Positions 5-26,179 of a DNA stretch of 37,190 bases are shown one piece after another. The DNA lies in NCBI GenBank assembly GCA_943704425.1, contig CALSCP010000795.1:1-37190 (forward strand). Reading direction: 5' to 3'. The notes below the pieces were generated by a model. The model was given only the letters and a program-made list of their open reading frames with translations. It ran no database searches and was not told where the DNA came from. The position numbers were made by a program, and so were the translations under genes. Source of the DNA: Ministeria vibrans ATCC 50519 (Eukaryota > Protista > Filasterea). Each line of letters starts with the position of its first letter. Within the stretch, counting starts at the first letter, position 1.

Positions 5-3000
5 CGGCGTGCGTACTCCCTGCCCAGGCGGCCAGTACCAGCCTGACACTGGCAAGACCTCCTGCATTGCAAAAAAAGAAACCCACAAAATAAAGAACGA
101 CCGTTCTAACCGTCTTTCGTCTTTGTCCCCTCGCTTGTTGCGTACAGGAAAGCGGCACCCGAGGATGCGGCTGCGGATCGGCGATGGTCAAGGCTCAGAG
201 CTGCGGCGGAGGCGGCTGTGTCGCGTGGTGCTGGGACAACAAAGCCGTCGGCTCGTGCGTTGGACCCTTGTACCCGAAAATATTCTATCCAAGCTACTGG
301 AGCTGTGGCTCAAACCCCGCGTGTTGTTGCACTGTCGGCACTTGGTCGTCATGGAGCGCTTGCAGCGTCACGTGTGGCTCAGGCACGCAGACTCGCGCGA
401 GGCAAATTACGGCCGCTGGCGACGACTGCCCCTTCGACCTGAGCGAGTCAAAGGCCTGCTCCAGCGGCAACAGTTGCGTCGACTGCGAGGTTGGTGCTTG
501 GTCGAGTTGGTCGACTTGCTCCCTCACATGTGGCAGTGGCTCACAAACTCGCACGCGACCCATCACGCAACAGCCAGGTACGGGTGGCGCCGCATGTCCC
601 AAAACTGACCAGACCCAGGCGTGCAACACGCAAACGTGTCCCGTCGACTGCGTGGTCACCAACTGGAGCTCATGGACGGCGTGTTCACTCCAGTGCGACG
701 GCGGAACACACACTCGCTCGCGCTCCATCACAACGCCTGCCGTAGGCACCGGCACCGCCTGCCCATCTAATCTGGTCGACTCAGGCCCGTGCAACGAACA
801 GGCCTGTTCCATAGACTGTGCCGTGTCCGAATGGTCTGCCTTTGGCAGTTGCTCTGCCACGTGCGGTGGTGGAACATACACGCGGACACGCGTCGTAATC
901 ACACCCGCCTCCGGCGGTGGCAGTGCGTGTCCCACTCTCACCGACACGGACAGCTGCAACACACAAGGATGTCCTATCAACTGTCAACTCAGTGCCTGGA
1001 GCTCGTACGGCGAATGCTCCCTCAACTGTGGCGGTGGCACACAACGTCGGTCGCGTCAAATTGACGTTCAGCCTCAAAATAACGGTCTACCCTGTGGCGT
1101 GCTCTTTGAGGACCAGGCATGCAACACCCAACAGTGTCCTATCGATTGCGAGGTAGGCTCCTTCGGCTCCTGGTCGACCTGCTCCGAACCCTGTGGCACG
1201 GGCACGTCGCAACGCACCCGTCCCATTTTGGTACAGCCATTGTTCAACGGCAGCCCCTGTCCCACCACCGTGCAGAATATTGACTGCAACACGCAACCCT
1301 GTCCAGTTCACTGTCAAGTCTCCGACTGGGGCTCCTACTCAGCCTGCTCGCAGCCTTGCGGTGGTGGCGACTTTACCCGTTCGCGCTCCGTGCTCGTACA
1401 GCCCCTACATGGAGGAGATCCTTGCCCCCCTCTCACCGAGACGACGCCGTGCAACACGGCTCCCTGTGGCCAAGACTGTGTTGTGGGCTCGTGGACTCCG
1501 TTTGGTGCGTGCACTGCCTCGTGCGGCGGTGGCACGCACACTCGCACTCGCCCCATCACCACACCACCCACCAATGGTGGCGTGGTGTGTCCGCCCGTCA
1601 CCGAAGTGGAGTCCTGCAACACAGGACCCTGTCCGCAAGACTGTACCGTCACCGAGTGGGGTTCGTGGACCGCGTGCACCAAGACGTGTGGCACCGGCTC
1701 GCGCGAACGTACCCGTGCCGTGTTGCGTCCTTCCTCCAACGGCGGCGCTACCTGCCCCGCTCTCACCGATTCGGCGAGCTGCAACACGCAAACTTGTCCG
1801 ATCGACTGTACGCTCACGCAGTGGACTCAATGGTCTTCGTGCTCCGCTCCCTGTGCGGGTGGCACGCAAGAGCGCACGCGTACCATTGACACGCCTGCCG
1901 GTCCTGGTGGCCAGGCCTGCTCGTTGGTGCGCAGCGAAATTTCGCAGTGTAACACATTTGTGTGTCCTCGCAACTGCGAGGTGAGCGAATGGAGCCAGTC
2001 GGGTGCTTGCAGCGCGCCGTGTGGTGGTGGTACTTCGGTGCGCGTGCGAAGTGTCTTGCAGTCGCCCGCCTTTGGCGGTACACCCTGTCCCAACACGACC
2101 GAGTCGACGCCATGCAACACACAAGCGTGCTCTGTCGACTGTGTACCGAGCGCCTGGACCGTATGGTCCAGCTGCACCCAAACGTGTGGGGGGGGATTTC
2201 AAGTGCGCAATCGTACCGTGGTCACACCCGAATCACTGGGTGGTCAACCTTGTGGTGCTCTAAGCGAGGTAGACGTGTGTAACACCGCAGCTTGCTCCCA
2301 GCCGTGCACCGTCACCACTTGGTCGTCGTGGACCGAATGTTCCGCACCCTGTGCCGGTGGTACGTACGCACGTCTGCGCTCCATCGACACTCTTCCTGTG
2401 AATGGAGGTGCCGCTTGTCCCGCTCTCTTTGAGGAAGGGCCTTGCAACACACAACCGTGTCCCATTGACTGCCAACTCTCAGCCTGGGGCGACTTCTCGT
2501 CGTGCAGTGCCCCTTGCGATGGTGGCACGCAGTATCGCAACCGCACAGTGGTCGTTTTACCACAATTCTCTGGGACACCATGCGAAGCTCTCTCCGAGAC
2601 GGTTGCCTGCAACACTGCTCCCTGCGTGGTGGACGGTGTCGACTGTGAGGTCAGTAGCTGGTCCGAATTTGGCCTGTGTAGTGCCGTGTGCGACGGAGGC
2701 ACGCGAGTGCGCAACCGTACCGTCACCGTACCCGAGTCGAATGGTGGTCAACCTTGCCCACCCCTGGCCGACGTGGAGGTGTGTGGCACTCAAGGGTGCG
2801 TCGTGGATTGCGTCGTCGACAGTTGGTCGTCGTGGAGTTCGTGCTCTGCGACCTGCGGCAACGGAACGCTGTCGCGTTCGCGTTCAGTACAGGTTCAGCC
2901 GCGAAACGGAGGCGCAGACTGCGGCGTGCTTGCCGAGAGCACCGGTTGTTTCCTCACACCGTGCCCCGTCGACTGTGTCGTCAGTGAATGGTCGATCTAT

Positions 3001-6000
3001 GGTGCTTGCAATGCCTCGTGTGCTGGCGGTGTTGCCGAGCGCACGCGCACCATTGTGGCACAGGCTGTCGGCACCGGCGCTGCGTGTCCGGCGAAACTTA
3101 ACGAATTTACCACGTGCAACACTCAGCCGTGCCCCGTCGACTGTATCCTCGGCGAGTGGTCTGCCTGGGATGTCTGTTCCGAAGCCTGTGGCTCGGGCAG
3201 CCAATCGAGATTTCGTTCGGTGGCGGTGCCGCCGGCACACGGCGGTCTTGCTTGTGGCGCGCAGTCTCAATCACAGGCGTGCAACCAGTTTCCCTGCCCC
3301 ATCGACTGTACGCTTGCCACTTGGTCAAGCTGGGGTACGTGTTCGGTCGCGTGCAATGGCACCGGCGTTCAGATACGCACGCGTCTCGTTGATGTGCCCG
3401 CGCAGTTCAACGGCACATGTGATGCGCCTCTCAGCGAGTCGTTGACCTGCGATAATGGACCCTGCCCGGTTGCGTGTGTCGTCACCGAGTGGACATCCTT
3501 TGGCAGCTGCTCCGTCTCGTGTGGTGGTGGCGGTACTCGCTTTCGCTCGCGTGCCATTGTCGAGCCGCCGCGACACGGCGGCACGGCGTGCCCATCGCAG
3601 CTTACCGAGACTGAGCCGTGCGGCAACACAACGTGTCCTATCGACTGCGAGGTGGGTCAATGGTCGGCGACGGCGCCCTGCAATGCCACGTGTGGCGGCG
3701 GCACGCAGCCTCGCGCACGCCCCATTCGCGTTCAGCCCGACTTTGGGGGCGTTGCATGTCCGCCTGTGGTTGACACGGCCTCGTGTAACACCCAGGTGTG
3801 TGCCAACAACTGCACCGTGACCGAGTGGAGCGCCTTTGGTGAATGTACTGTGGCCTGTGGCGGTCCGGGTACACGGCTGCGGACTCGCACCGTTATCGAG
3901 CCGCAGGTGGGCACGGGCACGGCGTGTCCTGTCCTCCAAGAGGTCGACTCCACTTGTGGGGCAACACCCTGCGCCGTCGACTGTGTCATGAGTCAGTGGA
4001 GTTTTTTTTCGTCGTGCAACGCCTCGTGTGGCGGTGGAGTCCAGTCGCGCACTCGCAACGTCACCGCTGCTGCACAATTTGGCGGCACGTGTGCCGGTGA
4101 GCTTGTGGAAAGTTTGGTGTGCAACGATCAGCCGTGTCCGGTCAACTGTCAGGTGGCGCTGTGGTCACAGTGGAGCTTCTGTTCGACGCCGTGTGGCGAA
4201 GGCTCGCGCACACGATCGCGCAAAGTACTGACGCCGCCACTGGCGGGCGGTCTCGCGTGCCCGAATCTAACGGAAACGAGCAACGTGTGTCCCGAGACTT
4301 TCCCTTGTGTTATCAACTGCGTCGTGAGCAGCTGGGAACCGTGGGGCAACTGTTCGACAAGTTGTGGTGCGGGAACGCAGGGGCGCGTTCGCTTCGAGTT
4401 GGTCACACCCGACGAAGGCGGCGATCCTTGTCCCGATCTGTTTGAGTCGCGCGCGTGTAGCAACGGAGCGTGTCCTGTCGACTGTGCGGTCGACGCGTGG
4501 TCGTCCTGGACGACTTGTAGCTCCAGTTGTGGTACGGGCACTTCCTCGCGGTCTCGCTCGGTGACCACACAGCCGAGCGCTGGCGGAGCGCAGTGCCCGG
4601 TGCTCGTCGAGTCGTTGGGTTGCAACACCCACCCGTGTCCCATTGATTGTTCGCTCAGTGACTTTGGTCCATATGGTGCCTGCAACGATACTTGTGGGGC
4701 GTCGGCATCGCAAACGCGCTCGCGCACTATTTTGCAAGCGCCCTTGTACAACGGGACCGCGTGTGCGCCGCTCGAGGAGACCGTCTCGTGTGACTTGGGA
4801 CCGTGTCAGATTGACTGTGAGGTGACCTCCTGGTCATCGTGGAGTCCCTGTACCAGCTTTTGTGGTGGAGGTATACAGCTGCGTTCGCGCGAAGTGCTGC
4901 GTGGCGCACAGTTTGGAGGGACTGCCTGTCCACCGACTGCGGACATGACGGACACACTTGAGTGCAATACGCAGGCGTGCTACAACGCCTCGCTCGATTG
5001 TGGTGTTCCCTACATGGAGTGGTCGTCGTGTTCGCAGCCGTGCAACGGGTTGCGCACGCGCGAACGTAACGACACCTACGCACTTGCAGACTCGTGCATT
5101 CCCTACTTGGACATTGAATCGTGCAGCACGCCCGCTTGCGGCGGCACCGGCACCCCCAACTCGCAATCGCAAAACTCGAGCGGGATTCCCGTTGCGGCCG
5201 TGGGCGGCGGTGTTGCGGCAGCCCTCCTTTTGTTTCTCCTCATTCTTCTGGTGCTGGCTCGGCGACGACGTCGGCGCAAGGAGGAGATTGTGGATCAGCA
5301 GATGGAGCGTGCGATGAGTACCAACGGCCTTCTCTCCTACAAGATGTCGACCCACTCGCTCAGCGAGGACATGGCGGTGCGACGCGCTCTCATTGCCGAG
5401 GCGTCCGTCGCTGAGGGTTCCGAATACGGCGAATACCAGAATGCGACCTTTGAAGACGACACGTACGTTGGGGCGAGCGGCTCGCGAGCATCGTTTACGA
5501 ACCTTGGCGCACCGCTTGGCAAGCATGGTCGTAGTGGGCGTCTCGTTGCCAATCCGTTTGCTATGAATGATGCCGCCAAGCCGACGACTGCGGAAGCGAC
5601 TGTTGGACCGGCTCTGATTGCCGCTGCGGGTTTGTCCGCGACCCCATCAGCAACCATTACGGAGGAGACCGCGTACGTGTTGCCGGCGGACAGCAAGCGT
5701 GGCGCCGCCGGCTATGCCAACATTGCCTTGGCCGTGCTCGACGACGATTACTTTTATGTGAACCAAAAGGAAGCGCCCGACTACGAGAAGTACTCGAATC
5801 TCACGGGATTACACATGAACGGCGACGTGTACGCGGTGGTCAAGAAGAAGTCGTCGCACAAGGATAGCGTCCTCGATGGAGATTTGTACGTCAACGGCGG
5901 TGCAGCTGGCGGCACAAGTGCCGATGACATGTACGTTTTGCCGCGCGCGCCGGCCGATGCGCCCCCCGAGTTGCCCACATCGCTGCAAGAGCCCGGCGAT

Positions 6001-7681
6001 GACTATGAAGCGTACGCACAGGCAGTGCTTAGCAACGACACGTCTGCATTGTATGCGACCGTGCGTCGACGCAAGCCTGCCGCGCGGGGTGGCATTCCTT
6101 CGAGTCTTGGTGCGGAAACTGTTGCTTCGCGACCGCAAACACTGTCGGCACAGGTTGACGATCTCTACATGTATGTGCGACCGAGTCGTGCCGCCTCGGT
6201 GATTCCCGACGAGTATCAGGTGCCTGGCTCGGACATGACAGCGACCAAGAGCAACTATGCCAACCTTGATGACGACATGTACACGTCAGTGCGAGCGCCC
6301 GTGGGGCTAGTCTCCAAGCTGCGCAGCAAGGAGTACGACCGCCAGTGGTTGGTGGTTCTGGAGATGCTGGGCGAGGGTGAGTTTGGCACGGTGGTACGAG
6401 CGGAGACGAACGACGGCGGTGCGTCGCCCATTTACAATGTGGCCATTAAATCGCTCAAGCCGGGTGCCTCGGAGACGGATGTGACCAACTTCTTGCGCGA
6501 AGCCGAGCTCATGCTTGACTTTAACCATCCCAATGTGCTCAAGTTGGTGGGTGTTGCCATGGAAGACGAGGTAGAGAGGACGTTATTTTTTTTGAACATT
6601 TGTGTGAAAGTGTTTGAGGAAGCGAGAGAAAATAGAAAATAATTATGATGCTAATGCGTTTTTTTTTTCAATGCAGCCCCTGTTGATTATCCTGGAGTTT
6701 TGCTCGAACGGCGACCTGCGGACTTTCTTGCGCTGCTGTGCGACCACAGCGGGTGTCTCCATCGGTGACTCGGAGCAGTTGGACGTGGCGCGCCAGGTTG
6801 CCTGTGGCATGACTTACCTCGCCGAACGCTCCTTTGTCCATCGCGATCTTGCCATGCGCAACTGTCTTGTCGATGAGTTTGGCACTATTAAGGTCAGTTT
6901 GTTCGCCCCTCAACAAAGTTAAAAGTGTTCTCATCTCTCTTTTTCGACTAGATTGCTGATTTTGGTCTGAGTAAGGACCTGAGCGAGAGCAACTACTATC
7001 GCATCAACAAAAACTCAAAGCTGCCGATTCGCTGGATGGCCATTGAGTCTATGGAACGCCGCACATTCACTGTTAAATCGGACGTCTGGTAATTTTTTGT
7101 GTCAAGTGGGATTCGTGTCTGACTGTTTTTTTTTTTTTTTTTTTTATTTTTTTTATTTTTTTTTTTTTTTTTTTTTAATTTTTTTTAATTTTTTTTTTGT
7201 GTGTGTGTGTTTTCTTGTGTTTAATAGGTCGTATGGGGTTCTCTTGTGGGAAGTGTACACGTTTGGTACTGTTCGGCCGTACAAAGGTAACGTGACACAC
7301 GCTCACACACACTTGTGTGTCTCTTCCTCGTTTCACTTCGTTACTTTCCCTCACACTATTGTTTTTTCGTTTTGTTCTTTCTCTCTCTCTCTCTATCACT
7401 TTGTTTCTTTTTTTTTTTTCTCTCTCTCCATTTAAACTTTCAAAACAGGTCTTCAATTGCGCGACCTGTACTTTTGGTTGTTGGAAGGCAACCGTCTCCC
7501 GCGTCCCAAGTCGTGTCCGTCGCACGCCTACGAGTTGATGCTGCTGTGCTGGCAGCCCGACCCCAATGTGCGTCCATCTTTTGCCGACGTGCTCCAGCGC
7601 ATCAACGGCCTTGCGCCCTCGCTCCCTCCGCCTCGCAACATGGTGGCGACTCTCGAGGCTGCCACCTCTTCTCTTGCGTAG
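5..7681 (+). CDS. Receptor tyrosine kinase with ~29 spondin-type thrombospondin type 1 repeats (5' end outside the window)
   Basis: Proposed exons: 5-68, 148-6570, 6677-6892, 6952-7088, 7228-7286, 7449-7681. Exon 5-68 encodes CPGGQYQPDTGKTSC (GCC2/GCC3, ephrin-receptor-like Cys repeat). It is followed by 28 full and 1 degenerate DCxVxxWSxWSxCSxxCGGGxxxRxR repeats, a TM helix (VAAVGGGVAAALLLFLLILLVLA-RRRRRRK, ~5190-5280) and a Tyr-rich linker. Kinase motifs reassemble in frame across GT-AG introns: GEGEFG, VAIK, HRDLAMRN, KIADFGLSK, NYY, KLPIRWMAIE, SDVWSYGVLLWE. Confidence 0.95.
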
Positions 7682-8107: not shown

Positions 8108-11006
<2,899 letters not shown>

Positions 11007-11588: not shown

Positions 11589-11850
11589 NNNNNNNNNNNN
11601 NNNNNNNNNNNNNNNNNNNNNNNNNNNNNNNNNNNNNNNNNNNNNNNNNNNNNNNNNNNNNNNNNNNNNNNNNNNNNNNNNNNNNNNNNNNNNNNNNNNN
11701 NNNNNNNNNNNNNNNNNNNNNNNNNNNNNNNNNNNNNNNNNNNNNNNNNNNNNNNNNNNNNNNNNNNNNNNNNNNNNNNNNNNNNNNNNNNNNNNNNNNN
11801 NNNNNNNNNNNNNNNNNNNNNNNNNNNNNNNNNNNNNNNNNNNNNNNNNN

Positions 11851-20553: not shown

Positions 20554-23500
20554 TCACTTGGTCGCATCCTTCTTGTTCTTCTCCTCTTCGACAACCTCTC
20601 CGTCGCGAATGGTCTCGTCCCCCTCGGCCGTCTTCTTATTCTCTTCTGCGTCAAACTCCATCACAATGCGCTCCTTGGCGTTGACCACCTTGGACATGAG
20701 GTAGAAGGATCCGCCCTTCTTAGGGTCATTCGACTCAAACAAGTGTTTGTAGTTCTGTCAAATACACAGTATTGATCAACTCCTTTGGTTTCTGCAGGGC
20801 ACGGTGGCGGCAAGAGACCCCGCATTGCCTCTCCACCCCTTGCATACCTTTAGGACGTTCTCAAGGGGTTCGCCTGGATTGGTATTTAAGATCTGGTGTG
20901 ACTCGCTCAACGTGATGCCAGCCTACGCAAACAGGGCAATGACAACACCATCCGAGGGCGGGACACGCCGCATATGCGCCTGGTATAGGGTGTATGGGGG
21001 CGCACATGCAGGCAGCACACTCGCATAAGTTTGAGTGGAGACGGATGAAAAAAAAAAAAAAAAAAAAAAAAAAACGAAAAAAATTAATTCACTATCCGGA
21101 TTATATTAGATGTAACAAGAAGTGCCATACAAACGATTGCCAGACACGCATATACATATAAATATTATAACATAAAAAGTACAATCTTAATTTCAGTTGA
21201 GTGAGCGAGAATGGAAAACAAGAAAAAGAGAAACAAAATCGACTTTCGACTCATTTCTAGCGTGATCCGACAATGCCAGCAACCCTCCGTGCTCCTTCCC
21301 TCGCAATGTTGCACATGCAAACAACGTCGCAGGCGAAAAACCACTGATGACATATTTATCGCACTTGACAAAGAAGAAACCTTTTCCCATACCCCACGAC
21401 AGATACTCTAAGTATCGGACGCCCTACTTGCGCATGATGTATCATCATTGTAGTACGTGGTGTGATAATATAGAAAACATATTTGAATTATTATGAATTC
21501 AAGTCATCCAGTGCAAAATGAATACGTGTGACAGTTGGTGCTAGACGCAACGAGACGCGTCTGCCTCAGCCTGACATGTGAAATGTGGCAACACAGACGT
21601 GCCAATCACTCTTCGGTAGAGAAAAGCAATGACACAAAGGTGGCAGTTGAGGAGCGACGCAGGGAGAGGACTCAAGCGGGTGCTGGCAGTGGCGGTGCAC
21701 ATCGACAAGTCCCACCAGCAAACAAAACGAATAATGTACCTTCGCCAACAGACACGTCTGACAGGGTCAGGCGCATTGAAAGAACGCTTCCGTCGCTGTG
21801 TAGACCTTCAACACAACGAGATGTTCCAATGACGCGCGCTTCGCCGGTGCGGATGTAGCGCTTCATGAAGAATTCGTGCATTTCCGAGTAGGGCGGCGGC
21901 ATCAGCATAGAGACGTTCTGCCACGGATCAATCTGTTAGTGGGGAGGGCTCCCTTCTGACGCGAGGCACTGAAGCAGACACATACCTTTCCAATGAGCGA
22001 GCTGGGCTCGTAGCCAAACATGGAGCGGACGGTGTAGTTGACGGAAAGGATATTCCCAATCGAATTGGTCATAATCACAACGTTGCCGCGATTTTCGCTC
22101 GCGACCTGCGCTATGCGTTGACCTATGGGTGCCACACCAGCTCGGGTTTGCATAGTCTCGGCCGGCGGCGACGTTGGTGCGGCGGCAAAAGGGCAGGCGA
22201 CCGCGGGGGTTATGGGGTTGGTTGGCATCAAGGTCGCCGCGCTGCCATCGTCGCTGGCGCTTTCCGACATGATCGAACCCGAGTTGGACGACCCGGGCGT
22301 CAGCCGGAGTCGTTTGACGCCCATGGAAGGCCCCGACTCGCTGTCACTCGTTTCCATTTCGGTGTAAAAAAAATAGTGAAATTTTTTGATTGTCAATTGA
22401 GACACAGATCTCTCATCTGAGACATCACTCACACACATAAAAGCCAAATGAGAATTTAAGGGAAATGATGATACTTTCAAACTAGAGAGCGAATCTTCAC
22501 TACCCGATGACAATCTCAATTCTCTGACCGCCCGTAACCAGCAATAACAGCATGCGGTCCCTGTGACGACTGACGACATTGTCGTAAGATGTTAATCGAA
22601 ATGTAAACCAAAAAATAGGAAACTTCAACAGCTCAGCCGATACTACCAGCCCGTTCGCCCAGACAGGGTTGGGTGGCCCTGCAGCATTGTTGTCCAAACT
22701 ATCTACAGCCCCAACAACGAGCGCACCAGCCGCAATCGCTCTTCAATCGCTCCTCATCCATCGACTGATCGCTCTTCGATCGCTCTCCATTTCCAAATCC
22801 CTCTCCTCGCCGATTCTCCTCGAGTCTAACTCCCAAGACAGCTGCGGCAGTTCGTCAAAGCCCTAAGCCTCCACTGGCATACGGTGTATCATTGCGATTG
22901 CCTCACTGCATAGCGATTGTCCTTCTCCTTTTTTCTTTTCTTTTTAGATCTCGGATCTGGCAAATTAAATTGTGACAGGCTGACAGTAGTGAGTGCAGCA
23001 CCACGCAAAAGAGTTGATTCTTCATATACGTTTATTCAGACAGACTATTTTCGACTGTTTGCTCTGTTGACTTGCTGACTGTTTTACACTAATACACTTG
23101 CTCTGTAGCTGATTAAGTGAAGAAGACATTGATGCTGATGAAATAAAATATAATAATTATCATGTGTACCACGGGAGCGCCCCGCAGCCACCTGGACTTG
23201 CCGCCGCCGACCACCGATCCGATTGCCTCAACCACGACTTCGACTTTACACTCCTTGCCGACAGACACCTTCATTGTCAGAGCCCTAAGCCTCCTCTGGG
23301 GGTATGGCGTACCATTGCGATTGCCTCACTGGATAGCGTCGACACAGCCCTATGACCTACCACTGTTCTCCCATGTTACCTCTAGAGTTTCGGTCGAGTT
23401 TGCAAGGCGGTCTGGCTGTGTCTTCGCGTGGTGACTGTATCATTAATAAATGGGTTGTATTCTTCTTCTTCTAATAATTATCATAAATAAAAATACATGC

Positions 23501-24070
23501 AACCTTCATACAACCCATTGTAACTTTTGTAATGATTAATTATATAGAAGAAGAAGTAGAATTAGTCAATCGGGCTTTAGATTGAAGAACACAACCCAAT
23601 TATGAAAAAGAAAACAAACGAGTGCAACTCATTNNNNNNNNNNAAAAAAAAAAAAAAAAAAAAAAAAAAGTCTCGCGACTTTTCGATTGTCTACTTTTTC
23701 TGTCATACCTTCTTGTCCAACGCTGAGAGTTTATCCACGGTGGCATTGGTCGCACCACCAGCAGCACGAGCAGCAGACTCACGGGCAGCCTCTGTGGGAC
23801 GGCGGGGGAGGGAGGGAGAGGGAGGGGACAGCAGCACAGGACAGCACGACGGATGAGCAAAACGACCACGACTGGTCCGGAAGTAGACTTACCGGCAGCC
23901 GTCTTGGCAATCGCCTCTGTCATGGCTTTCCGTGCCGCTTGTGCCCCAGCAATAGCGAGTCGTGTGAGGATTTGCACGACAATTCTTTGAGGCTATCAAA
24001 ACAAGGCAATCAAAAGACGAGGGAGTCAGAACGCCGGCCAGTATGCATGTACCATCGTCCATCTTACCAT
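20554..24070 (-). CDS. PAM16: Mitochondrial import motor J-like subunit Pam16/Tim16/Magmas
   Basis: Proposed exons: ATG-only at 24070-24068 (alternative 24055-24053), 23992-23893, 23791-23709, 20922-20848, 20754-20554. Spliced product: [28 protein letters not shown]...DKK|[14 protein letters not shown]...LK|[30 protein letters not shown]. GGSFYLxSKV is the Pam16 hallmark, and all intron phases are compatible. Confidence 0.92.
21672..22357 (-). CDS. Stand-alone FixL-like heme-PAS domain protein, nested in PAM16 intron 3
   Basis: Proposed exons: 22357-21986 and 21917-21672. The 3' end is uncertain because a further donor near 21740 is possible. The spliced PAS reads [31 protein letters not shown]|[53 protein letters not shown], matching the FixL pattern IGxNVxxLMPxPxxxxHxxYxxRYxxTxxxxIIGxGRxVxGxRxDG. 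Confidence 0.85.
22854..23338. repeat. Two diverged ~62-bp direct repeats (22854-22915, 23276-23338)
   Basis: gtcaaagccctaagcctccactgg-catacggtgtatcattgcgattgcctcactgcatagcg versus gtcagagccctaagcctcctctgggggtatggcgtaccattgcgattgcctcactggatagcg. Confidence 0.85.
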
Positions 24071-24176: not shown

Positions 24177-26031
24177 ATGGACAAGAGCGCCTGGAATTAC
24201 CCCGAGCAGTCTGTAATACTGCGTCTGCCGGAAGAGATTGCAGCAAGCTTGCGAAAGCGACTGCAATCGAAGAAGGAGAGCAAGCAGGATGCGATTCGCG
24301 TGCAAATGCAGACGGAGCGTCTGGGCACCGTCGAGATTGTCCATTCGGGGGTTGTGCTTGACGCAACCCTCGTGGACTTGCCGGCGATCATTGAGGCGCA
24401 GAAGACCAACAACGACAAGACGGTGTTTACCAAGACGGGCGATGTGGCTCAGGTGCGCAACGGAGAGCAGAAAAGAAAGCTAAATGACCCTTTGCAAAAT
24501 GTTCTGAATCTTTGTTCCTATCGTCTTTCCCCCGTCAGATGCTCATCTGTGAGCTTCAGCCAATGGAAGCCGCCCCAGAGGGACTCTCGTCGGAAGAAGA
24601 CGGCCGGAAGCAGCAGGAGGTGGGCAAGTGGCGCCTGTGGTCGCAGCGGGAGGTGGACGCGGAGAAGAACCGCTACGCGTATCCGCACGGACTCACGCCG
24701 CCCCTCCACAACGTGCGCTCGCGACGATGGCGGAAGGTGAGCGGGCTTGTTGCCGACGATCAAGAGGTGCGTGACCGCGTGGCACAGTTGCTTGCGGCCG
24801 ACGAGCACGCCGCGAGCATTGCAACCGAGGTGGTGTACGAAGACGGGGGCGGCGCACAGGACTCAGACTCAGACAACGATGACGACGACGACGACGACGA
24901 CAACGACGATGACGATAACGATGGCGAGCAGGAAGACGGAATAAACGAGCACACCGATGCGAATGGCAATAGTCAGCACACGGCAGCAGCATCAGCAGCA
25001 GCAGCAGCAGCAGCAGCAGCATCAGCAGCATCAGCAGCATCAGCAGCATCAGCAGCATCAGCAGCATCAGCAGCCACGTCGCGAAAAAAGGCCTCTACCA
25101 AGAAAACATCTCGGAGCACGACAACGACCACAACGCCCAAAACCCCCGTAGTGTCTGCCGAGGAGGTTGCAGCAGCAAAAGCTGCTGCGGCTGTGCAACC
25201 CATGGAAATGGAACCACCGGCACTGTCGTTTACGTTCAATTCTCCTCCTATGTCGTTTGATCGACCGCCACCACTCACTCTTCCCACTGCTTCTTCTGAG
25301 CAGCCTACGTCGCCTTTCTTTAGCGGCTCTCTGACCTCTACGGCCATTGCCACTCCCAGTGGCCTCGAAGGCGCTTTTCTGGACTTTAACGAGCTTCTCG
25401 ACGACAACCCCTTGGCAACCGACGCGTCCCTCCACCTTTCCATGACTCCTGCCCTCACCGCTTCCGTTCCATCCGCACCCGCACCCGCACCCGCACCCAC
25501 ACTTACTGTAGCGCCCCCGACCTTCTCCGTCACATTAAAAGCGCCCGCACCTTCGCCCACCACCTCCACCTCCACCACTACCACTACCACAACAACAACA
25601 ACAACAGCTTACCCTCCGCCCCCCCCACACATCACCGCCCCTCCACCTTTCTCTGCCCCTACCACTGCCTCTATCACTACCGCTCCTACCGCTGTTGCTC
25701 CTACCATTGCTGCTCCTACCGCTGTTGCCCTTACCACTGCTGCCCCTACCACTTCCCCTGCCGCAGTTGCCGTTGCTCCTGTGCCAATGGACATTGACCC
25801 CCCTCCCTCCTCAAATTCTTCTCTTCTTCAAGAAATCGCTCAGCTCGAAGCGAAACTCGCCGAAATTGAAGATTTTATGGAAAAGGTCTCTCCCTTCCCA
25901 CTCCTGTCTCCACCCTTTTCTCACACATGCACAATTTTTCTTAGGTTCCAAATCCCATTTTGCGCAAGAGACGAGAACCCGAACGTGAAAAGCTACGCAA
26001 GGAAATCGAAGAGAAGCGCAGCCAGTTGTAA
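24177..26031 (+). CDS. TAF7: TFIID subunit 7
   Basis: Proposed exons: 24177-24452, 24539-25885, 25945-26031. TAFII55_N motifs: EQSVILRLP, LVDLPAIIEAQKT, KTGDVAQ|MLIC, YPHGLTPPLHNVRSRRWRK. These are followed by acidic and low-complexity linkers and a C-terminal coiled coil with NPILRKR. Confidence 0.95.
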
Positions 26032-26179
26032 AAACATATTGTTATAAGGGGGGGGGGAATGAAATCTTAAACCAGGGTGAAGTGAGTGTTTATTGTCTGC
26101 CTTTTTTTGTAATGTAAGAAGAGACAGATTGCCGTTAAATAAGAGGTTCAGGTGAAGAAGGGAGAGGAAATAAGAAATA

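Follow-up and report, generated by a model that had tools for sequence, protein, structure and literature searches.

A FixL-type heme-PAS gene that appears nested in a PAM16 intron of Ministeria vibrans has probably been placed there by a false assembly join

The window analyzed here, 37,190 nucleotides of contig CALSCP010000795.1 (C795) from Ministeria vibrans, raises the question of whether a mitochondrial import gene truly harbors a sensor gene within one of its introns. Pam16/Magmas (Tim16) is the J-like subunit of the mitochondrial presequence translocase motor, and its gene is essential in yeast. In the assembly, PAM16 appears to hold, on its own strand and within a single giant intron, a gene for a FixL-type heme-PAS module; a first-pass annotation had proposed this nesting and had rightly named what would refute it, a PAM16 intron of about 190 bp with the PAS block belonging elsewhere in the genome. 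Our analysis favors a different answer: with a probability of roughly two in three (about 0.68), the presence of the PAS block in the PAM16 intron is an assembly artefact resulting from a false join at an A-run.

The outer gene is a real PAM16. Read from the sequence letters, it is encoded in five exons on the minus strand, listed here with the intron in question:

24067-24069, minus strand: exon 1, consisting of the ATG and followed by donor GTAAGA (read directly from the sequence)
23893-23992, minus strand: exon 2, N-terminal hydrophobic helix (hhalign to an eight-orthologue Pam16 profile)
23709-23791, minus strand: exon 3, Ala-rich linker ending in phase 0, donor GTATGA (read from the sequence)
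20923-23708, minus strand: apparent intron 3, 2786 nt as assembled (GT..AG, phase 0)
20848-20922, minus strand: exon 4, start of the J-like domain (hhalign and a weak Pfam Pam16 match)
20554-20754, minus strand: exon 5 with the stop codon (Pfam Pam16, phmmer and the ENA metagenome contig L021)

Exon 5 alone matches Pfam Pam16 (PF03656) over positions 78-121 with 49.2 bits (E 6.9e-13), the curated cut-off being 30.3 bits, and a phmmer search with this exon returned 214 Pam16 relatives, the closest representatives sharing 53-66% identity over it. Exon 4 gives a weak Pfam Pam16 match at positions 54-68. When aligned by hhalign to the profile of eight Pam16 orthologues, exon 2 falls on columns 4-24 (48% identity, with a weak E of 0.014) and exon 4 on columns 53-70 (E 1.2e-4), in the same collinear order as in the orthologues. 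Pfam alone did not match exon 2 and a family search did not match exon 3; the linker encoded by the latter corresponds to a region that is variable among the orthologues. The J-like domain is degenerate and lacks HPD, at which place the orthologues have ND[KPQ]. The genome contains one such locus, and the locus is compact: PAM16 lies 105-108 nt from both neighboring genes, the ATG of TAF7 standing on the opposite strand at 24177, 108 nt from exon 1. As first annotated, the donor of exon 3 (AAG/GTATGA) and the acceptor of exon 4 (GCGTAG/GC) are indeed in phase 0 and separated by 2786 nt in the assembled letters, and the identification of the gene as PAM16 is upheld by Pfam, phmmer and the profile. 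The remaining three introns measure 74, 101 and 93 nt.

The inner gene has a start codon of its own and is itself spliced:

21986-22357, minus strand: exon 1, an 85-residue low-complexity N-terminus and the first third of a PAS domain (translation, weak Pfam)
21918-21985, minus strand: intron 1, 68 nt, GTATGT...CAG, phase 0 (sequence)
21740-21917, minus strand: exon 2, FixL-type heme pocket from the F-alpha helix to the H-beta strand (phmmer against PDB)
21672-21739, minus strand: read-through tail to TGA, probably not coding (GC3 0.27, candidate donor at 21740/21739)
21541-21608, minus strand: weak candidate exon 3 (…LPHFTCQAE…, then stop), in phase 1 after acceptor GAAGAG/

Both the ATG at 22357 and an intron of the gene's own had been proposed at first reading and are borne out; the intron measures 68 nt (21985-21918), splicing restores the frame, and read-through meets a stop at 21902. 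Exon 1 shows weak matches to Pfam PAS_9 and PAS over residues 91-124. Exon 2 was not recognized by a Pfam scan at all, and a phmmer search against PDB confirmed its FixL-type assignment, matching RmFixL 1d06 with an E of 2.1e-11, BjFixL 1xj2 and 1dp6 at about 3e-7, and EcDOS/DosP more weakly. The His of EMHEFF aligns with the His of the F-alpha helix that is the proximal heme ligand in RmFixL and BjFixL, and the Arg residues of MKRY and TSRCV align with BjFixL Arg206 and Arg220. In FixL, these two arginines bind the heme propionate and the ligand.

The coding exons of the PAS gene have GC3 values of 0.72 (exon 1) and 0.63 (exon 2), and the neighboring genes 0.63-0.68; over the 22 codons of the read-through tail the value is 0.27. 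The tail is probably non-coding because a likely donor, G/GTACAT, stands at 21740/21739; a donor of the GTAC type is used by the patatin gene of the same genome. Candidate exon 3 produced no family match. Exon 1 supplies the N-terminal third of the PAS fold, and the last strand (I-beta) is not clearly encoded. This strand and the 3' end of the gene may lie beyond the suspected false join, or the gene may be complete within the block as assembled. An Atlas look-up returned 'PAS' only. The ENA metagenome contig L020 is 99.57% identical to the PAS gene region over window positions 22400-21470, with one substitution in 550 coding nt and three in 381 non-coding nt. Judged by its native GC3, its frame-restoring spliceosomal intron, its FixL match and this environmental contig, the PAS gene is a real and native one, and its product is a putative heme-PAS module of the FixL/DosP kind, presumably serving in gas or redox sensing.

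Both genes being real, the question turns on the DNA that joins them:

21048-21083, plus strand: left bracket of the block, A27-CG-A7, free of N, the suspected false join (sequence)
23634-23669, plus strand: right bracket, an N10 scaffold gap and then A26 (sequence; flanks unique in the genome)
23163-23491, minus strand: 5' part, about 320 nt long, of a truncated dispersed-repeat copy (genome matches)
22854-22915: second, decayed piece of the dispersed repeat

Within these brackets, of which A27 occupies 21048-21074 and N10 23634-23643, lies a 2.55-kb block (21084-23633) made up of the dispersed-repeat fragment, 1.3 kb of AT-rich flank and the spliced heme-PAS gene. The block is single-copy in the assembly, and A-runs on the same strand bracket it at both ends. 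The N10 gap falls in non-coding sequence, with no real reading frame crossing it, and its flanks (...CATT on one side, A26 on the other) share no overlap. The dispersed repeat has about 45 further near-full-length matches in the genome at 86-99% identity, plus shorter fragments; other copies extend further 3', and many of them border on a gap or the end of a contig. Neither the block nor the repeat is accounted for by an Rfam family or a tRNA, and no part of the window appeared human.

The assembler has most likely put two ordinary genes, PAM16 and the heme-PAS gene, together. The block would belong to another locus, likewise bounded by A-runs; the contig coming from PAM16 exons 5-4 would have been carried through the A27 tract into the block, and a contig starting with A26 and holding PAM16 exons 3-1 would have been scaffolded behind it via a minimal N10 gap. 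If the block is removed, intron 3 keeps 39 nt (23670-23708), one T-run and 125 nt (20923-21047), about 190 nt in total. A length of this order is near that of the remaining PAM16 introns (74-101 nt), which favors an artefact, as does the compactness of the locus. The true intron 3 is most likely of about this length, with one long T-run on the strand of the gene. Furthermore, it is a priori unlikely that a gene essential in yeast would carry, in an intron of 2.8 kb, another gene on the same strand that has a 3' end of its own.

The artefact is also favored by the finding that joins of this kind have been made elsewhere in the same assembly. On contig C2128, exon 1 of ZNF622 (residues 3-35 of PDB 6lqm) with its donor GTAAGG runs N-free through A28 into the last exon of a G-gamma gene. 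The continuation of ZNF622, beginning precisely with residue 36, is found on contig C397, 121 nt from where that contig begins; the A28 join is demonstrably false and carries no N. The second case is on contig C1725, where two (CT)n arrays enclose half of a lipase gene (DUF3336 and Patatin 1-58) and the C-terminal exons of USE1 follow directly downstream. The donor of the lipase half (...AYDRTG/GTACTA) is continued in phase by ...TTGTTAG/GTCGT on contig C1405 (RVLNITV, Patatin 126-171), where this next exon stands just after (CT)18. Thus, the (CT)n join beside USE1 is demonstrably an N-free false join, the proof applying to the right-hand join only; Pfam gave no confirmation of USE1 N-terminal exons upstream of the first array. 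The geometry on C1725 is the same as that at PAM16, a misplaced gene piece between two arrays of one repeat. Short N runs in this assembly can, moreover, hide overlaps, since on contig C1483 the same 63 nt stand on either side of an N7 gap (L012 1149-1211 and 1219-1281). It is from these precedents and from the brackets that we infer the join in PAM16 intron 3 to be false.

Two ENA metagenome contigs of the same organism approach the junctions: L020, introduced above, and L021, which is 99.3% identical to window positions 20992-19980 and covers PAM16 exon 5. Both end short of the A-runs and neither crosses a boundary; the proteins they encode form singleton clusters. Neither the TAF7 ORF nor two ORFs next to the left junction gave an exact match when looked up, and JGI metagenome scans with a 25-mer next to the gap and with back-translated PAS exon 2 found none. 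The assembly contains neither a second PAM16 copy nor an allelic contig without the block, and when the next exon of the PAS paralogue was used to search for a 3' portion of the gene located elsewhere, only the paralogue itself matched. No sequence with a short PAM16 intron 3, and no other locus for the block, was found. Uninterrupted, trustworthy sequence running from PAM16 exon 3 through the PAS gene to exon 4 is likewise absent, the path being broken by the N10 gap and the A27 tract and spanned by no bridging contig.

The principal alternative, unlikely though to be taken seriously, is that the assembly is right and that the PAS gene, its flanks and the transposon fragment truly reside, on the PAM16 strand, within a 2.8-kb intron of that gene. 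Such an arrangement could have arisen, for example, through insertion of a DNA segment into a pre-existing intronic A/T tract, PAM16 being spliced across a gene with its own promoter and 3' end. Several features speak for it: the join at 21048-21083 is contiguous and free of N, the donor, acceptor and phase of intron 3 are intact, and the two parts of PAM16 stand on a single scaffold, correctly ordered and oriented around the block. On C2128 and C1725 the false join visibly interrupts a gene; the join at PAM16 does not. The N10 gap lies exactly at the start of a long A-run, where a correct assembly would also break, and the 13-nt direct repeats on both sides of the transposon fragment indicate that this DNA has taken insertions. 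Two A/T runs 2.6 kb apart by chance are not impossible, and runs of 20-23 T are found elsewhere in AT-rich islands of the window. Against this, a long run of the same base at both ends of the block is what misassembly predicts, and real nesting gives no mechanistic ground for it; the intron would exceed the other three roughly 30-fold in length; and the arrangement found no support in any relative or independent contig. Hence, same-strand nesting in a giant PAM16 intron stands as a description of the assembled letters and does not stand as true placement, given the N10 gap, the A27 tract and the false-join precedents: the claim of a nested gene requires a true join at A27, and N-free false joins have been shown at an A-run and at (CT)n in the same assembly. 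It is highly improbable that the block truly adjoins PAM16 and that the PAS gene is non-autonomous, a decaying fragment or a set of alternative exons of PAM16 transcripts, for while PAM16 exon 3 ends and PAS exon 2 starts in phase 0 and the C-terminal PAS strand is not clearly encoded, the exons have native coding GC3 with start codon and intron intact, substitutions relative to the environmental contig are fewer in coding than in non-coding sequence, a chimera of PAM16 exon 3 and PAS exon 2 would be missing the initial third of that domain, and the doubtful join would still have to be true.

As to the wider proposals of the first-pass annotation, we found no support for a transcriptional entanglement of the PAS gene with mitochondrial import, nor for a mitochondrial Pam16-PAS chimera, the join of exon 3 to PAS exon 2 carrying only about half a PAS domain. 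A story linking oxygen sensing to mitochondrial import should not rest on the PAM16 locus before the join has been verified. Were the join real, for which the odds are rather poor, a heterotrophic protist with a compact genome would carry, within a PAM16 intron and in sense orientation, a FixL-type heme-PAS gene that stands alone. To express PAM16, transcription would have to proceed past the 3' end of the guest gene, and the amount of import motor could couple to transcription of a putative O2/NO sensor gene. For this genome more generally, any block that seems nested in an intron and has the same homopolymer or microsatellite at both ends should be regarded as a suspect join, two such cases having been shown to be false.

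Compared with known repeat-bounded misassemblies, the PAM16 locus has the same simple sequence on both sides of the block, one minimal N gap and a host gene that is normal without the block, together with two verified cases in the same assembly. It differs from the cases verified here in that the block contains no visibly truncated gene and its join would be false by inference. The host protein resembles Pam16/Magmas (Tim16) in its N-terminal hydrophobic helix, variable linker, degenerate J-like domain and GGSFYLQSKV-type signature, with NDP replacing the HPD of true J proteins; it departs from its closest representatives in the extent of exon 5 identity given above, and its gene has four introns, one of them inflated to 2.8 kb in the assembly.

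The PAS gene product compares most closely with FixL of Rhizobium meliloti (1d06) and Bradyrhizobium japonicum (1dp6, 1xj2), E. coli DosP/EcDOS being the weaker match. Sixty-four residues of exon 2 align from F-alpha to H-beta, with EMHEFF in place of EHHDGY, Arg at the positions of BjFixL Arg206 and Arg220, and Leu at 236. In contrast to FixL, no histidine-kinase or other output domain was found in the block by reading frames and Pfam, the 85-residue N-terminus is disordered, and a spliceosomal intron lies inside the domain. For these reasons, and because I-beta is unclear and Pfam silent on exon 2, we regard the product as a heme-PAS module and not as a FixL orthologue. The genome holds one PAS paralogue, on contig C1483, which carries a second PAS-like region and what appears, read by eye, to be the start of a Ser/Thr-kinase domain. 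A literature search for eukaryotic FixL homologues returned nothing usable; the FXL proteins of Chlamydomonas, which are eukaryotic FixL-like heme-PAS proteins, share with the present genes the occurrence of such domains in nuclear genes of a eukaryote. Unlike Chlamydomonas, the organism is apparently not an alga, since no chlorophyll a/b-binding protein genes were found in its genome. This apparently non-photosynthetic eukaryote has a pair of FixL-like heme-PAS genes, of which one apparently stands alone and the other has an apparent Ser/Thr-kinase start downstream; both would be additions to a sensor module already known.

PAM16, a member of a family of established function, is present once in the assembly (29.7 Mb, 2860 contigs searched), and its exons were read as follows.

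24069-24067, minus: exon 1, an ATG followed by GTAAGA, from sequence reading
23992-23893, minus: exon 2, aligning to columns 4-24 of an eight-orthologue profile
23791-23709, minus: exon 3, ending in phase 0 at AAG/GTATGA
20922-20848, minus: exon 4, starting after GCGTAG/, with a weak Pfam Pam16 match and aligning to profile columns 53-70
20754-20554, minus: exon 5, Pfam Pam16 E 6.9e-13, model positions 78-121

Exon 5 by itself exceeds the Pfam Pam16 cut-off, and it served as the query with which the eight orthologues of the profile were retrieved. As exons 2 and 4 align in order to this profile, the two halves of PAM16 are collinear parts of one gene. PAM16 sits tightly between its neighbours: its stop lies 105 nt from that of a beta-lactamase-fold gene, and its ATG lies 108 nt from that of TAF7, with which it thus has a divergent promoter in common. 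TAF7 (TAFII55_N; 24177-26044, plus) is itself split between two ORFs that overlap, one covering model positions 2-82 and the other 81-159, indicating an intron or frameshift near 24512-24740. As assembled, PAM16 intron 3 (20923-23708) measures 2786 nt, the remaining introns being 74, 101 and 93 nt. That exons 3 and 4 join in phase 0 across this distance, as the first-pass annotation had claimed, was borne out by direct reading of donor and acceptor.

The independent spliced gene that had been described within this intron likewise stood up to a reading of its exons and intron. It lies, together with part of a dispersed repeat, in a 2.55-kb block at 21084-23633.

22357-21986, minus: PAS gene exon 1, 124 codons from the ATG at 22357, with the PAS start at its 3' end
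between 21986 and 21917, minus: PAS gene intron, 68 nt, GT..AG
from 21917, minus: PAS gene exon 2, matching FixL heme-PAS structures
23163-23491: truncated 5' piece of the dispersed repeat, ~320 nt, with a further piece at 22854-22915

Retention of the intron would lead translation into a stop codon. The read-through tail of exon 2, running to a TGA at 21672, has a GC3 of just 0.27, which suggests that the exon ends at a phase-1 donor, G/GTACAT, at 21740/21739; a GTAC-type donor is in use in a patatin gene of the same genome. The candidate for exon 3, at 21608-21541, is weak, and the last PAS strand is not clearly encoded.

The PAS gene is real and native to this organism, given its native codon bias (GC3 0.72 and 0.63 in its exons vs 0.63-0.68 in four neighbouring genes) and a 931-nt ENA metagenome contig 99.57% identical to window 22400-21470, with one coding and three non-coding substitutions. 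Together with a second such contig, matching 20992-19980, it belongs to ENA ERZ23497388 and ERZ23497041 (samples SAMN09406007 and SAMN09406010; ~1-kb contigs). With 99.3-99.6% identity to the window, they indicate that this organism, or a strain very close to it, is found in nature, with low coverage in those samples. The protein clusters of both contigs are singletons. No chlorophyll a/b-binding protein genes were seen in the genome, and the organism looks like a heterotrophic protist. Elsewhere in the window, an intronless ORF of 2152 aa (184-6639, plus) carries ~28 thrombospondin type 1 repeats, and at its end a Tyr/Ser-Thr kinase domain begins; its product looks like a TSP1-repeat receptor kinase. 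Runs of T20, T21 and T23 and a 262-N gap (7126-7176, 10935-10957, 11589-11850) occupy AT-rich, strongly strand-skewed islands between genes.

The nesting of the PAS gene in a giant PAM16 intron, as had been proposed, fared less well: we put the probability that it is an assembly artefact at about 0.68. On the plus strand the block is bracketed by A27-CG-A7 at 21048-21083, free of N, and by a gap of ten N (23634-23643) followed by A26; its removal would leave an intron of ~190 nt, ordinary for PAM16, made up of 39 nt, a single T-run and 125 nt. In the non-coding DNA here, long homopolymers recur regularly, and they are likely points of breakage or mis-joining. The N10 gap lies in non-coding DNA crossed only by spurious poly-Phe and poly-Lys ORFs, and its flanks, ...CATT and A26, share no overlap and are each unique in the genome. 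Short N runs in this assembly can mark overlapping contig ends rather than missing bases, since an N7 gap on contig C1483 (1212-1218) has a 63-nt duplicate on both sides (1149-1211 and 1219-1281). No independent sequence crosses the N10 gap, the metagenome contigs ending at 22400/21470 and at 20992; exact look-ups of ORFs near the junctions and scans of JGI metagenomes gave no match.

Two false joins elsewhere in the assembly further favour an artefact. On contig C2128 (L023, 76471-79572; ~1960-2110, minus), ZNF622 exon 1, matching human ZNF622 (6lqm) at residues 3-35, is followed by a GTAAGG donor, A28 and then a G-gamma gene's last exon, which encodes a CaaX end. ZNF622 from residue 36 onwards lies on contig C397 (L025, 1-2516), 121 nt from the contig start, so that C2128 is falsely joined at an A-run in N-free sequence. 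On contig C1725 (L032, 90500-97600; 4498-6388), two (CT)n arrays enclose the N-terminal half (DUF3336 E 2e-37, Patatin positions 1-58) of a TGL4-type patatin lipase, directly upstream of the C-terminal exons of USE1. Its last exon there ends ...AYDRTG/GTACTA, and the C-terminal half, resuming in phase with ...TTGTTAG/GTCGTGTG (RVLNITV..., Patatin 126-171, then a DGS motif) is found on contig C1405 (L033, 1-8000; 4364-5232), directly after (CT)18, which a Kelch-type gene precedes. With a simple repeat of one kind at either end, this gene piece stands in the wrong locus, in a geometry identical to that of the PAS block. Pfam gave no confirmation of the USE1 N-terminal exons upstream, and the position of this piece inside an intron is thus putative.

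True nesting is the less probable reading, at perhaps one chance in four. In its favour, the left join (21048-21083) is contiguous sequence, the PAM16 halves stand in correct order and orientation around the block, and the join cuts no gene visibly. A correct assembly, too, would be expected to break right where a long A-run begins, and the window has T-runs of 20-23 nt in AT-rich islands elsewhere. Moreover, the truncated repeat copy implies that this DNA took insertions before. That copy has a 13-nt direct repeat (ATGATAATTATTA) on either side and belongs to a family with ~45 further near-full-length matches in the genome (86-99% identity), without a match to Rfam or tRNA; other copies extend 3', many adjoining N gaps or contig ends. 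Readings besides these two share the small remainder. A chimera joining PAM16 exon 3 to PAS exon 2, also envisaged, would be in frame, but its PAS fold would be incomplete. No mitochondrial link of the PAS protein was found.

At its 3' end, exon 1 of the PAS gene encodes the opening third of the PAS domain (Pfam PAS_9 and PAS, weak matches). Pfam recognised no family in exon 2, which matches solved FixL heme-PAS domains (1d06 E 2.1e-11, BjFixL ~3e-7, DosP/EcDOS weaker). The alignment keeps the proximal-ligand His, Leu236 and two Arg, which we take to be BjFixL 206 and 220. The one paralogue in the genome, 42% identical over exon 2, occupies C1483:1-2461 (L012/L034), with a FixL-like PAS in three exons and then a second PAS-like region; the first bases of the contig are T33, closely followed by an acceptor, and the gene is thus probably headless. 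Further downstream, judged by eye, it resembles the start of a Ser/Thr-kinase domain (MEHCSGGELFDYV...).

Given these matches and the conserved His, Arg and Leu236, 'FixL-type heme-PAS' is a fair description of the module, and the identity first proposed holds at that level. In FixL a kinase domain follows the heme-PAS, whereas none follows in the PAS gene, which is therefore not a FixL orthologue. From its pocket residues only, the protein most likely serves as a heme-based sensor module for gas or redox state, and would act via partners or a further downstream part.
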